Assembly (NCBI GenBank): GCA_964234715.1
Contig: OZ174275.1
DNA: 64,000 nt
Strand: one strand, 5' to 3'
Source of the DNA: Podarcis melisellensis
Taxonomy: Eukaryota
Shown: in pieces, positions 12,001-18,000 of the stretch
How positions within the stretch are numbered: the stretch's first letter is position 1
Layout of the letters: each line of letters starts with the position of its first letter
Program-made: the position numbers and the translations under genes
Notes under the pieces: model-generated
Told to the model about the DNA's origin: nothing
Databases searched by the model: none
What the model saw: only the letters and a program-made list of their open reading frames with translations

Positions 12001-15000
12001 ATACATAGTTCTTCTATTATAATAACTTAAATAAGCCATGTTCTGATGTCACAGTAAGTCATAAACCATTAAAAAGTGGCAATCTAGTGTATGCTGTTGA
12101 ATCACTCCTGTTCTGCTCTTCCCTTTGTCAAATTTCGGAACAGAAAACCATGAACCTTGGGCTAAGTGTAACATGAAAACCAGCCCTCATTGTTAGTTTT
12201 CTCCAGACAAACCAGTACTTGTTCTTGGCTTACCAAACACAGTTTGTTTGGAAGGAACAATGAGTGCTGTTTTGCACATTACGTTAAGCCAGTGGTTGTG
12301 GTTTGTTGCTCCTGGCTCAGTGAAGAGATTCAGCCAAGTTCATAGCTCATTCACAGGAAACCATGGCAGTGGCTTACCATGACGTGCAAGCAGGACCTAA
12401 GAATAACTGAGTCAATGTGCATTGTTTATTTATTTATTTATTTATTTGTCTTGCATTTCAGTGAATTTGGTTCAAAAATAATCTCACTGAAGCCAATAAT
12501 CAAAGTGTTGCCAAAACTCTTTGAGTCTCGAGAGAAGGCTGTTCGAGATGAAGCCAAACTTCTCGCTGTTGAGATCTATCGGTGGATAAGGGATGCTCTC
12601 AGGCCTCCATTACAGAATATAAACTCTGTTCAGGTAAGCTTGGCAAGCACTGTGTTCTAGCATTCTTAGTGTAAGAAGCCGCCCACCAGTAGAGCAGGGT
12701 ATATTTTTGTTACATCCTTTGACTTGAGCAAAAGGGAGGAAATGAGTAAATCTTTAACCTAAGCAGGAGGGATGGGGTTGACCCAGAACTCATGCGGAGT
12801 CTTCCCAAACAAGATGCTACTTCACATAGAGGCTTAATGTGACCAGGTCACCATGTCCCTTTCTTTAGCTTTAAGCTTCAAAAGGTAGAGTATCTCCTAG
12901 ACCATGTTCTAAGTATGAAGTGGCTAAGTAAAAGCAAGAGAGCAGGCATATTTGAACCCCAGTGATGTATCTGTGTTTTCATTGGGCTTTCCCCCCTTTA
13001 AGTAGAGGAGCAATTCATAAATAAGAGCACTATTATCCAGTAAGCAAAGGAGATACTTAGAAGTAGGGTCTTGGTTTTAGGGAAAGTAAAACTGTAAATA
13101 TTGTTGTACTAGGGGCTGCCAACCCCATACCCCCACACTTGGCCCCTCTCCTCTTTACATCTTGCCCATCTCTTTGCCAAGCCCCACACAGGACACCCAC
13201 ATCTCCCTTCACCTCGCAGCTTGCCCCAACTCTCACTCCCTTTTAACAAACCACTCTCTGAAACTCCTCTCACCCTTCTTTAAATAGCTGTTGCTTAAAT
13301 TTGCCTGCTTGCTGCTCTGTCGTTACATTGGCCTTAGGCAGCTACACAAACTTCAGCATGACAGGCTTACAAAATTATTATATAAGAAATGCCCACCAGA
13401 CCCTAGCTTGAACTGATGCTTAACTAATATTTTCCATGAGAAATCTCAGATGTAATATTTTGCTGCATGTTTTTAGATCTGTCTCAACATTTTTATCTAT
13501 TTTTAAACTGGCAGATAAATTCACACATTCAAGTGAAGTCGCAGCATTGTATAATAGATTTATCACTTTTAGCTTAGGCCTGCATTGTTAGCTGCCAGAC
13601 TTGATAAAATGTTGCATAACTGATGTGATAGTAATTCATATGTTCAAGTTAGCAAGTAATAACTTGAGTTGGGAATTGTGTTTGACACGGTCCAAAATTT
13701 GTCAGCTCGCAAATAATGAATGTCATTTTCTTGTCTTAAGTGAAAGTATACTGCTGTGAATCACCCCACCCCCCTTAAGACAGAGTTTTTGGAGTCCACT
13801 GCACACTAATTAATTTCCCTGAATTTAATTTGATAAAAAAGCAGTTAAATTGAACCTAGGTAATGAAGAGATGTTAATGATCTTCTGCTCTAGCTTTCCT
13901 ACAGTAGCTCAGGATTATGGCAAGCTTAAGGAACAGTTTTACTTGTGACAAGGGAGAATAGCACTGCACACATATCAGTAGGACATTTTGTGTTTTGATT
14001 CTTGCAGTTAAAAGAACTGGAAGAAGAATGGGTCAAACTACCGGTATCAGCTCCCAAGCAGTCACGGTTCCTTCGCTCCCAGCAAGAAATGAAAGCAAAG
14101 TTTGAGCAGCAACAGGCAGCTGGTGGAGATGCAGATGGAGGTAACTGTTGACTTGGGACTTCACAGTAGATAACTTTGCTGACTAAGAGTCAGATGAAGG
14201 CGGTCAAAAAACATAAGCTGGCATAAAATGTTGATGCACATCAATCTCTAGGAAAAGTCATTGATTGCAGAGTTAATACTCTGCTTCACAGCTTACTATT
14301 TTACATATAATAAAGTAAAAATAGTGACATAATTAGCCCATCATGGACTAGTGCCATGCTGTTTTTATTGAAATTATTTGTATGTTTTAAACCTATTTAG
14401 AACGTATTATAACATATGTTTTAAACATTTTTTAAAAATTCTATTAATGTTTAATCATCTTTAAGCTATATTGAGTCTTGTCAGAGAAGAAGGCGGAGGA
14501 TAAAATATATATAATAACAGTGTCTGGCTATATATACTAACAATTCTTTCAATAGGAGGAGATGATGGTGATGAGGCTGTTCCACAGGTGGATGCCTATG
14601 AACTTCTGGAAGCTGTTGAAATTCTCTCCAAACTTCCTAAAGATTTCTATGACAAAATTGTAAGTGATGATTCAGTTAACCATTATTCCTTCTGTAACCT
14701 TAATAATAAATACACAAATGAATACAGTGGTGCCCCGCAAGACGAACGCCTCGCAAGACGAAAAACCCGCTAGACGAAAGGGTTTTCCGTTTTGGAGGCG
14801 CTTCGCAAAACGAATTTCCCTATGGGCTTCCTTCGCAAGACGAAAGCCCATAGGGAAATCTCCAGGGACAGCGGGGAAGTGCAGCGCGTCTTCCCCACTG
14901 TCCTCGGACCTCCTCCGAAGCCTGGCGATGGGGCGGAGAGCCCTCCTCCCCCCGCCAGGCTTCGGAGGGCTTCTCCGTAGCCTGGCGATGGGGCGGAGAG

Positions 15001-18000
15001 CCCTCCTCCCCCCGCCAGGCTTCGGAGGGCTTCTCCGAAGCCTGGCGATGGGGCGGAGAGCCCTCCTCCCCCCGCCAGGCTTCGGAGGGCTTCTCCGTAG
15101 CCTGGCGATGGGGCGGAGAGCCCTCCTCCCCCCGCCAGGCTTCGGAGGGCTTCTCCGAAGCCTGGCGATGGGGCGGAGAGCCCTCCTCCCCCCGCCAGGC
15201 TTCGGAGGGCTTCTCCGTAGCCTGGCGATGGGGCGGAGAGCCCTCCTCCCCCCGCCAGGCTTCGGAGGGCTTCTCCGAAGCCTGGCGATGGGGCGGAGAG
15301 CCCTCCTCCCCCCGCCAGGCTTCGGAGGGCTTCTCCGAAGCCTGGCGATGGGGCGGAGAGCCCTCCTCCCCCCGCCAGGCTTCGGAGGGCTTCTCCGAAG
15401 CCTGGCGATGGGGCGGAGAGCCCTCCTCCCCCCGCCAGGCTTCGGAGGGCTTCTCCGTAGCCTGGCGATGGGGCGGAGAGCCCTCCTCCCCCCGCCAGGC
15501 TTCGGAGGGCTTCTCCGAAGCCTGGCGATGGGGCGGAGAGCCCTCCTCCCCCCGCCAGGCTTCGGAGGGCTTCTCCGAAGCCTGGCGATGGGGCGGAGAG
15601 CCCTCCTCCCCCCGCCAGGCTTCGGAGAAGCCCTCCGAAGCCTGGCGGGGGGAGGAGGGCTCTCCGCCCCATCGCCAGCCTCCTCCGAAGGCTTGCGGTG
15701 GGAGGAGGGCTTTCCTCCCCACTGCCAACATTCAGAATGCTGTTCTGAATGTTGGCGGTGGGGAGGAAAAACCCTCCTCCCACCGCAAGTCCCGGGAACA
15801 GAGGAGAAGCGCTGCGCGCCTTCCCCTCTGTTCCCGGACCTGTCCTGAAGGCTTGCGGTGGGAGGAGGGCTTTCCTCCCCACTGCCAACATTCAGAATGC
15901 TGTTCTGAATGTTGGCGGTGGGGAGGAAAAACCCTCCTCCCACTGCAAGTCCCGGGAACAGAGGAGAAGCGCTGCGCGCCTTCCCCTCTGTTCCCGGACC
16001 TGTCCTGAAGGCTTGCGGTGGGAGGAGGGCTTTCCTCCCCACTGCCAACATTCAGAATGCTGTTCTGAATGTTGGCGGTGGGGAGGAAAAACCCTCCTCC
16101 CACTGCAAGTCCCGGGAACAGAGGAGAAGCGCTGCGCGCCTTCCCCTCTGTTCCCGGACCTGTCCTGAAGGCTTGCGGTGGGAGGAGGGCTTTCCTCCCC
16201 ACTGCCAACATTCAGAATGCTGTTCTGAATGTTGGCGGTGGGGAGGAAAAACCCTCCTCCCACCGCAAGTCCCGGGAACAGAGGAGAAGCGCTGCGCGCC
16301 TTCCCCTCTGTTCCCGGACCTGTCCTGAAGGCTTGCGGTGGGGAGAAAAGCCCTTCTCCGCACCGCCAGCCTGGCAAGCGGTCTCCATAGGAACGCATTA
16401 ATTGATTTTTAATGCATTCCTATGGGAAACCGTGCTTCGCAAGACGAAAAACTCGCAAGACGAAAAAACTTGCGGAACGAATTAATTTCGTCTTGCGAGG
16501 CACCACTGTAATCTTTTTCTGAACCATAGACACTAAACTATCTTCCCCATTTTCTTGCACAATTAACTGTCATGTTCTATGTATCTACAAAACAGCTTCA
16601 TTTTTCAGAAGTCTTAATTAAAATGGCTTCATGTCCAGGGACATTAAAGTATTTGATGGGAACTCCTGAGCTGTCATTGAATGAAAATAATAAAAGTGCT
16701 TCAGTTTATCTTGGGTTTCTACAAGTGTGTGAAGGTGCTTCTCCTGTACACAGAGATGCTGCCTCAGCACAAAAGCGCATCATGTCCAATAATGCATATA
16801 TATAGACATAAATCATGTTGTATATATAAGGCTACATGTTTTTCTAGAAACAGTGCACATCTATTTGGGTCTATGTCTGCTGGTAGTAAAAGTTTTCCCT
16901 CAACACACATAGAAAAATCTATACTGACAATGTAATAAACAAATGGCTGAAGAAGGCTGTGTCTGCAAGTGTTCTGGTTAATGTTACAGGATTTGCAACA
17001 ATTTCTGAAGACCAAGGTACATATAATTTTTATGTTTTGCATTGCAGGAGGCCAAAAAATGGCAGGAGAGAAAAGAAGCTTTGGAAGCAGTGGAAGTGCT
17101 AGTTAAAAATCCCAAACTTGAAGCTGGAGACTATGCAGACTTGGTGAAAGCTCTTAAAAAGGCAAGGACCTCTCTAATACCCAAATAGTCCTTTCCAAGC
17201 CAAATATGTGGCATCACTATTACTGTATTTAAAAAGAGGTTTGATAATTCATTGGTTAACACAGAGTGTGATTATAAAGTTCATTCATGGGATTGATTTG
17301 ATCATGTGACAGTGTTTGAATTGCTGGAATGGGAATAGAAATGCTGACATTCAAATATGTGGGAGTGCAATTGATATAGGTGGAATAAGGGGTTGGGTGG
17401 GGAAATGCAGTGTCTAGTATAGTTCTCCTGAGTTTGCAGAGGTACACTGTTGCTGCTGCTTGTTTAGACATCCCGTCCAAATAATCTGAGATCTCAGACT
17501 ATTGGATTGTAATGTTCCTCTTCCCCCACAGGTTGTTGGAAAGGATACCAATGTAATGTTGGTTGCTTTGGCTGCCAAATGCCTTGCTGGACTGGCTACT
17601 GGTCTCAGGAAGAAATTTGGACAGTATGCAGGTCATGTAAGTATGCAGAATACAACTATTATCTGCAGAATAGAATATCTGAGGTGAGCACTGGGCTGTT
17701 ACTGGCTCCTGCTGCTTGAATATGAAACTCTTCTGTTAAACTTCTAACAAAGCGTGATGAAAAAGAGCATCTACAGGAAGGCTTTCCCACCTCGCTTTTC
17801 CCCCTTCCTTTTTAAAAGGAAAAATAAGAGCACTTCTTAATATTTAACCTTATTTTAAAGGGCTATCTTGAATAGGCTACTCGCACAGTGTTCCTTGAAG
17901 TAGTACAAGTTCAGTGTGTTTGTTTTTCTGTGTATGGGGCAAACAGGAGTTTTCTTATTGTGCACTCTCTTAGAGCACAGTGGGAAATCAAACATTAATT

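Follow-up and report, generated by a model that had tools for sequence, protein, structure and literature searches.

What kind of element lies at positions 14725–16508 of a 64-kb stretch of lizard genomic DNA (hereafter, the window), how were the tandem arrays inside it put together, and how long has it been there? The element is flanked by TA and is 1784 bp long, and approximately 80% of it consists of two arrays, 60 bp × 12.8 and 160 bp × 4.1. As the best explanation, we consider with high confidence that a non-autonomous DNA transposon of the Tc1/mariner-pogo superfamily, which targets TA, inserted here recently and that it moves hairpin arrays as cargo.

Results

Ends and classification of the element

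The target-site duplication is observed as TA at 14723–14724 on the left and at 16509–16510 on the right. Both dinucleotides are read from the letters and from empty-site contigs, which hold a single TA (14722 joined to 16509, a skip of 1786 with two ambiguous letters). The left 22-bp TIR at 14725–14746 (plus strand) has no mismatch to the TIR pattern, where no chance match is expected, and the right TIR is located at 16487–16508. The two are complementary at 21 of 22 bases. The pattern is matched six times in the window versus zero times expected from 100 shuffles. The TA duplication and 22-bp TIRs proposed in the first-pass annotation are thus present around the 1784 bp, with one imperfect TIR position.

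Two short relatives with the same TIRs are found in the window, both on the minus strand, at 29806–30163 (358 bp) and 62972–63328 (357 bp). They are 96.1% identical to each other, and the former, which has the same ends, differs in its interior by 27-bp × 2.7 palindromic repeats. All three family copies in the window, the long one and the two short ones, have TA on both sides, and the long copy is about five times the length of the others, as had been noted. The left end common to the short MITEs spans 121 bp (14725–14845, plus strand; 95–97% identity to 30043–30163 and 63208–63328), and the common right end, which includes the right TIR, spans 76 bp (16433–16508, plus strand; 86–87% identity). 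Within the left end, the 12-mer TCGCAAGACGAA occurs four times on the same strand, either exactly or with a single mismatch. A 16-bp × 2.9 repeat at 14732–14778 contains two of these four, together with a further copy with two differences. The right end contains two direct 12-mer motifs.

No Pfam match was obtained for the open frames that cross the arrays, and no other long frame is present inside the element. Neither a transposase frame nor an autonomous partner with matching ends is present in the 64-kb window, and an exact scan with the TIR gave no match in metagenome contigs or viral contigs. These observations support a non-autonomous, TA-targeting element with intact ends that belongs to a many-copy family. 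Among TA-targeting groups, pogo/Tigger is a candidate placement only. At 1784 bp, versus 357–358 bp for its relatives, the long copy exceeds the few hundred base pairs of a miniature element, and MITE-derived, array-bearing non-autonomous element is the more fitting name for it.

Internal arrays and their hairpin modules

Tandem Repeats Finder places the 60-bp array (× 12.8) at 14913–15678 with 97% matches and a score of 1416, and the 160-bp array (× 4.1) at 15687–16342 with 99% matches and a score of 1298. Folding energies of the units were computed as single-stranded DNA. For the 60-mer, the energy is −28.1 kcal/mol (z = −6.6). Two hairpins are formed by the 160-mer, a nearly perfect one of 101 nt (−57.7 kcal/mol, z = −16.9) and a second one of 59 nt (−21.5 kcal/mol, z = −6.7). 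A strong hairpin is predicted in every unit of the arrays, in agreement with the self-complementarity claimed at first.

The interior can be followed from left to right on the plus strand. The left subterminal hairpin (14814–14859; −20.2 kcal/mol, z = −7.3) contains the point, 14845, at which the common left end terminates, and its second arm is found only in the long element. It is followed by hairpin module H1 (14860–14911; fold z = −3.0), which is identical at 42 of 52 positions to 15789–15841, the second hairpin of the 160-bp unit. Next, 12 forward 60-bp hairpin units of module H2 occupy 14913–15632, as delimited by the tandem-repeat, comparison and fold results. They differ at a single site (A/T), which alternates across the first six units. 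A 13th 60-mer at 15633–15697 lies on the minus strand (48 of 49 bases as in the reverse-complemented unit) and forms a palindrome with 65-nt arms together with unit 12. The arithmetic of about 12 × 60 bp plus 4 × 160 bp given earlier therefore needs correction: both arrays are present, and the 60-bp array consists of 12 forward units and one inverted unit.

In the 160-bp array (15687–16342, plus strand), the order within the unit is an inverted H2-like arm, a loop and an H2-like arm, which together form the 101-nt hairpin, and then an H1-like hairpin. The two arms are 84% and 81% like the 60-mer. The interior ends with a degenerate H2-like module (16322–16385, plus strand; 78% to the 60-mer) and a right subterminal AT-loop hairpin (16385–16425, plus strand; z = −4.5 for the fold of 16343–16430). 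Identity among units within the arrays is 98–100%, and the variants are ordered (the A/T alternation and a C-T-T-C series). The two arrays are therefore not independent but consist of related hairpin modules. The proposal of two separate hairpin satellites is not supported, since the 60-bp and 160-bp units are homologous modules.

A nested second transposon was considered as the source of the interior and rejected: neither a separate duplication nor separate inverted repeats delimit 14846–16432, and the modules are interrelated. No free-standing array of either unit is present within the 64-kb window. With 12 and 4 units, the arrays are in the size range of minisatellites.

CpG content

The GC content of the element is 64.9%, with 126 CpG over 1784 bp, and the observed/expected CpG ratio is 0.67, versus 0.21 in 10 kb of flanks. 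This is the composition of a CpG island (>200 bp, GC >50%, observed/expected >0.6). Only one CpG-to-TpG change is found in the arrays, common to two of the four 160-bp units, which are adjacent. The description of the element as a CpG island is right as regards composition.

Host gene and empty site

The exon upstream of the element is located at 14552–14659 (plus strand) with its donor GT at 14660, and 65 nt of intron lie between the exon end and the element. When the host exons were searched individually, the neighboring exons matched the Pfam XMAP215/Dis1/CLASP TOG domain, and SNORD67 sits in a downstream intron. By these matches, we regard the host as a vertebrate-type XMAP215/ch-TOG gene with intronic SNORD67, which bears out the earlier placement of the insertion 65 nt past an exon donor of a CKAP5-type gene. 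The element at this site is best explained as an intronic passenger close to the splice donor.

Four public runs, X1, X4, X5 and X13, were compared as short-read contigs. Two of them are samples of the best-matching species and the other two come from related species; empty-site contigs are found in all four. In X4 (a second sample of the same species) and X5 (a different species), the contigs skip exactly 1786 bp, corresponding to the element and one TA. These contigs are 1916 and 2437 letters long and cannot hold the element, because at most 299 letters are to spare at the joint. In X1, the best-matching run, the right flank is identical over 385 bp, and 14724 is joined to 16516 with ATC between them; this joint represents an empty site whose T-run is shorter by two bases. 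In X13 (third species), the skip is 1788 bp. The presence of empty sites in conspecific samples as well as in related species indicates that the insertion is very recent, and it is polymorphic or heterozygous. The suggestion that the element is young is supported in this way. Its present-day mobility is something we infer from the polymorphism alone.

Abundance of the family and growth of the arrays

In all four runs, the summed contig depth at the element ends is 10^4–10^5 times that of the single-copy flank, a rough value that is not a copy number. Past 14886, the depth drops to approximately 1–3% of the summed end depth. In the best explanation, we place the long element in a minor subfamily within a lizard MITE family of very high abundance. 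The depth of the 160-bp unit is approximately 150–3700 times the single-copy value, including runs with the empty site, and therefore the module exists at other loci. Other contigs fuse the left end directly to hairpins of the 160-bp unit (14855 to 15770 and 14838 to 15815), so simpler relatives exist, and the joints indicate relatives without the 60-bp array. The bins of the 60-bp array interior are empty or nearly empty in two other species, an uninformative result since contigs collapse arrays. With collapsed arrays and GC bias, contig depth is unusable for zygosity or for counting 60-mers. As a hint of species specificity in contig depth, the 60-mer appears in the source species, and the 160-bp unit is richest in a sister species.

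These data bear on an alternative in which the inserted element was short, with one H1 and one H2 hairpin, and the arrays grew in place thereafter. The near identity of the units is consistent with such growth, as is the scarcity of contig depth for the 60-mer interior in the two other species, and the CpG-to-TpG change common to adjacent 160-bp units shows duplication after mutation. However, the empty site persists within the species, leaving little time for the approximately 16 duplication events, and runs without the insertion show the 160-bp unit at high depth. We consider growth in place improbable, though it is the strongest of the alternatives to insertion of an element already carrying arrays.

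An assembly error, such as a misjoin or an inflated repeat, could have created the insertion or distorted the array lengths, and it would account for the empty site in four of four contig sets and for the lack, among the listed contig pieces, of any that crosses a filled junction or the interior of the 60-bp array. The latter is, however, the usual behavior of short-read contigs, in which high-copy ends always cause breaks and arrays are always collapsed. A misjoin would not leave an exact TA duplication with intact ends, nor would empty-site contigs then skip exactly the element and one TA, and the arrays carry ordered variants and are not a featureless run. An artefact is thus very unlikely.

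Least probable of all is a functional element retained because it acts as a promoter, a CpG island or a cluster of small-RNA hairpins: the island-like composition and the hairpins' sub-threshold matches to many microRNA precursor models would suit it, but the insertion is absent in conspecifics and related species and hence not conserved, none of the listed runs holding the stretch is recorded as RNA (six putative RNA runs contain only a 0.14–0.17 share of it), and no Rfam match attains the gathering score. A search of the element against Rfam at E up to 1 gave 312 matches, all below that score. A curated RNA family was accordingly rejected, the matches being mostly to unrelated microRNA precursor models with the strongest on both strands, as expected of any palindrome.

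Discussion

Relationship to known array-bearing elements

Tandem arrays inside MITEs, and stem-loop models for the growth of such arrays, are established (PMC3879986; PMC12628747). This locus had been singled out as the most unusual structure of the window, whereas its kind is already in the literature (PMC3879986; PMC12628747). The element is a lizard case of a kind known from frogs, clams and flies. It has a central tandem array between TIR-bearing ends, as do elements of the miDNA4/Xstir type.

miDNA4 (Scalvenzi and Pollet) is a Tc1/mariner MITE from Xenopus tropicalis whose interior contains a satellite, as described in PMC12628747 and PMC9659126. Like the lizard element, it is a vertebrate MITE of a TA-targeting superfamily with a tandem repeat inside. 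Its repeat is described there as ranging from one to many copies, and a route from MITE to satellite is proposed. The two are apparently unrelated in sequence, as judged by description only. Unlike in miDNA4, the lizard units are GC-rich palindromes, and two related arrays and an inverted unit are present. The miDNA4 model, as outlined there, needs AT-rich microhomologies, and none is seen in the lizard element.

For Xstir, on the Xenopus laevis MITE Xmix (Hikosaka and Kawahara 2004), a replication model based on stem-loops is proposed, as described in PMC12628747 and PMC3879986. It resembles the lizard element in that the repeats come from the MITE's own interior and form lineage-specific arrays riding on the MITE. 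Xstir is additionally described there as free tandem arrays and composites.

In DTC84, pearl and DINE-1-like elements of bivalves and insects, the ends likewise form a "cassette" around up to approximately five core repeats of approximately 160 bp, and hotspots of length change are proposed to lie at palindromes within these repeats (PMC3879986). They have an AA duplication, an adjoining tetranucleotide microsatellite and a possible affinity to Helitrons, in contrast to the TA duplication, the 22-bp TIRs and the lack of a microsatellite in the lizard element. Tetris, a foldback transposon of Drosophila virilis, is also a non-autonomous DNA transposon with internal tandem repeats, and these repeats gave rise to a satellite (PMC4079207). 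In Tetris, the tandem repeats form long terminal inverted repeats, whereas the lizard element has short TIRs of 22 bp and internal arrays in one orientation that are not mirrored at the ends, unlike those of Tetris/FB.

Our literature search found no report of MITE-borne arrays in lizards. The nearest literature concerns SINE-derived satellites of squamates, with no mention of MITEs. A literature search with the first 10 bases of the repeat gave only unrelated primer-type matches. New here are the empty-site evidence, the homology of the modules including the inverted 13th unit, and the small share (1–3%) of the end depth that belongs to the hairpin interior.

Proposed origin of the arrays

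In the preferred reading, that of a recently inserted transposon carrying its arrays, the ends would bear what a transposase supplied in trans needs, namely the 22-bp TIR and several copies of the 12-mer, of which those just inside each end may be transposase binding sites. The non-coding interior would have been assembled out of H1 and H2, two palindromic modules rich in GC. Tandem duplication may have expanded H2 into the 60-bp array of 12 units and one inverted unit, and the composite of inverted H2, loop, H2 and H1′ into the 160-bp array of four units. Hairpin-promoted slippage, unequal exchange and strand switching are plausible routes of array change, and the strand switching could have occurred during replication or during repair of the gap left by excision. 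The "vehicle" part of the first-pass annotation, in which the element carries the arrays as cargo, is supported. Its "nursery" part, in which the element would give rise to satellites, is a hypothesis, as is an effect of the CpG island or the insertion on the host gene.

A more ambitious reading, which we put forward only tentatively and regard as rather unlikely, is that a hairpin-array MITE subfamily is undergoing a burst in the lizard lineage, with array growth coupled to transposition via strand switching and slippage in post-excision gap repair. If so, every jump could give rise to arrays of altered length and to inverted units, and the seeding of species-specific arrays would be going on in real time.

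At present, the locus extends a known phenomenon by one case from a lizard. It provides a clear vertebrate instance of a DNA transposon with tandem arrays caught soon after insertion, and its internal anatomy shows two arrays arising from two hairpin modules. The family could serve for studies of satellite birth inside transposons. It could also address whether palindromic units drive changes in array length, and how far GC-rich, CpG-rich insertions are tolerated near the splice sites of essential genes.

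Ends and age of the insertion

As the first-pass annotation described, the long element (14725–16508, 1784 bp) has TA on either side and 22-bp terminal inverted repeats. The repeats match at 21 of 22 positions. The window contains six matches to the 22-mer, forming three pairs (expected 0, from 100 shuffles). Two pairs bound TA-flanked short copies, likewise foreseen, at 29806–30163 (358 bp) and 62972–63328 (357 bp), both in the orientation opposite to the long element. Identity between the long element and the short copies is 95–97% over its first 121 bp and 86–87% over its last 76 bp, and the short copies are 96.1% identical to each other. 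The interiors are unlike: in place of the arrays, the short copies have a 27-bp tandem repeat (×2.6–2.7) with palindromic units, at 29912–29982 and 63081–63148. Since these interiors are also palindromic and tandem, repeat-prone hairpin interiors seem to be general to this MITE family. Folded entire, the 358-bp copy gives −90.1 kcal/mol (z −9.8).

With one mismatch allowed, seven copies of the 12-mer TCGCAAGACGAA are present in the long element, whereas chance predicts 0.06 for the window as a whole. Four of them are at the left end on the same strand, and a 16-bp ×2.9 repeat there (14732–14778) includes two of these and another, more diverged copy. The right end has two direct copies in addition to the inverted repeat itself. 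The 12-mers are probably transposase binding sites. No transposase-like frame and no autonomous partner was found in the 64-kb window, and a Pfam search of the long open frames that span the arrays gave no match.

The age of the insertion was examined by comparing the stretch 14662–16900 (the exon left out), which is found in runs of at least eight organisms, with four short-read contig sets: X1 and X4, two samples of the best-matching species, and X5 and X13, two related species. In both X4 and X5, one contig at single-copy depth joins 14722 to 16509, leaving out exactly 1786 bp, equal to the element with one copy of TA (two letters are ambiguous). The lengths of these contigs (1916 and 2437 letters) leave no more than 299 spare letters at the joint, too few to accommodate the element. 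In X1, the best match, with 385 bp of identical right flank, 14724 is joined to 16516 with ATC between, representing an empty site. In X13, 1788 bp is skipped. Two related species therefore lack the insertion, and within the species it is either polymorphic or, in the source, heterozygous. Only one TA is present at the empty site, which verifies the target-site duplication. The long element is real and young, and the proposal of a young insertion is borne out. The length differences around the empty site should be noted. At the target (14721–14724), two bases are missing in one species (AT or TA; the alignment allows either), and the T-run at 16509–16518 is two bases shorter in X1. Both differences resemble the usual indels of AT-rich sequence rather than footprints of excision.

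Hairpin modules of the interior

Tandem Repeats Finder gives a 60-bp array (14913–15678, ×12.8, 97% matches) and a 160-bp array (15687–16342, ×4.1, 99% matches), which combined occupy approximately 80% of the long element. In register, 12 forward 60-mers differ only at one A/T site, which alternates across the first six units, and in unit 12, whose 3′ end is altered. Among the four 160-mers, a single site varies, with a CpG-to-TpG change common to units 2 and 3. The proposed counts of about 12 and 4 units hold in the assembled sequence, but the "13th" 60-mer (15633–15697) is inverted and agrees with the reverse-complemented unit at 48 of 49 bases.

As anticipated, the units of both arrays are self-complementary. 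In single-stranded DNA folding, the 60-mer reaches −28.1 kcal/mol (z −6.6), and the 160-mer forms a near-perfect hairpin of 101 nt (−57.7 kcal/mol, z −16.9) and a second one of 59 nt (−21.5 kcal/mol, z −6.7). Additional hairpins are predicted at 14814–14859 and 16385–16425. Rfam matches to the long element all fall below the family gathering scores; the many weak microRNA-precursor matches on both strands are expected from the palindromes.

The two arrays are not separate satellites as first supposed, since they share related modules. In the long hairpin of the 160-mer, the first arm resembles the inverted 60-mer (84%) and the second arm resembles the forward 60-mer (81%). The second hairpin is 81% like H1 (14860–14911), the module adjoining the 60-bp array on the left. 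A degenerate 60-mer-like module (78%) occupies 16322–16385, in the last part of the interior. With the 60-mer as H2 and variants marked by primes, these homologies give the layout: left end, H1, (H2)×12, inverted H2, (inverted H2, loop, H2, H1′)×4, H2″, right end. Judged from this homology, the whole interior is composed of two hairpin modules, apparently multiplied by tandem and inverted duplication.

Abundance of the family

By summed contig depth, which is a rough guide only, the element ends in each of the four runs are covered at 10^4–10^5 times the single-copy flank, and beyond 14886 the depth drops to 1–3% of the end value, suggesting that a small minority of the family has the H1/H2-type interior. 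By the same measure, the 160-bp unit reaches approximately 150–3700 times single-copy depth. This is far beyond one locus and is seen in runs with the empty site; the 160-bp module is thus dispersed to other loci. The depth is highest in X5 (approximately 3700 times, versus 150–240 times in the source species), which hints at species-specific amplification of the module in that organism. In other contigs, the left end is joined straight to the 160-unit hairpins (14855→15770, 14838→15815), indicating that simpler relatives exist. Within the 60-bp array, contig depth is very low or absent (zero in X5 and X13), which carries no weight, since short-read contigs collapse arrays.

Host gene and CpG content

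The long element is intronic in a gene on the plus strand. The upstream exon ends at 14659 and the donor GT starts at 14660, leaving 65 nt of intron before the element, exactly the spacing reported earlier. The neighboring exons, searched singly, match the XMAP215/Dis1/CLASP TOG domain (E 4e-20 and 2e-16), and yeast Stu2 was matched in a PDB search. A downstream intron contains the C/D-box snoRNA SNORD67 (43145–43254, plus strand; 100.6 bits against a gathering score of 35), the sole above-threshold Rfam match in the window; human SNORD67 resides in CKAP5. Taken together, these matches make the proposed assignment to CKAP5 reasonable, and the exon number given with it, 7, is provisional.

The long element is a CpG island by composition, as claimed, with a GC content of 64.9%, 126 CpGs, and an observed/expected ratio of 0.67, versus 0.21 in the flanks. 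Elsewhere in the window, 2001–3000 (GC 0.62), upstream of the first TOG-domain exons, may be the promoter CpG island of the host gene. The region 57001–58000 (GC 0.56) has long open frames whose translations are rich in Glu, Ser, Arg, and Gly, and a perfect 44-bp ×2.0 tandem duplication (100% matches) is located in an intron at 24612–24699.

Possible mechanism and relation to known elements

A transposase acting in trans would move the element by recognizing its 12-mer motifs and terminal inverted repeat. Given how recent the insertion is, and that the modules are also present elsewhere, the arrays were probably brought in with it rather than grown at the site. Hairpin-promoted slippage, unequal exchange, and strand switching, the last possibly during replication or gap repair after excision, may account for the growth of the arrays and for the inverted units. 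This proposal is in line with stem-loop models for Xenopus Xstir and bivalve DTC84 (PMC12628747, PMC3879986).

MITEs containing tandem repeats are a well-described kind (PMC12628747, PMC9659126, PMC3879986, PMC4079207). They include miDNA4, a Xenopus tropicalis Tc1/mariner MITE whose internal satellite varies in copy number (PMC12628747, PMC9659126), Xstir/Xmix in X. laevis (PMC12628747, PMC3879986), DTC84 and pearl elements in bivalves (PMC3879986), and DINE-1-like elements and Tetris in Drosophila (PMC3879986, PMC4079207). Of these, the lizard element matches the miDNA4/Xstir type. It lacks the long, repeat-built terminal inverted repeats that define foldback elements, and likewise the AA duplication and adjoining microsatellite that define the pearl/DINE-1 group. 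Our literature search found no report of array-bearing MITEs in lizards.

Of the first-pass reading of a MITE as both vehicle and nursery for hairpin satellites, the vehicle part is supported, and the nursery role is hypothetical, as is any effect of the CpG-rich insertion on the gene. The observation is confirmed, and adds a lizard case to the known tandem-repeat-containing MITEs.
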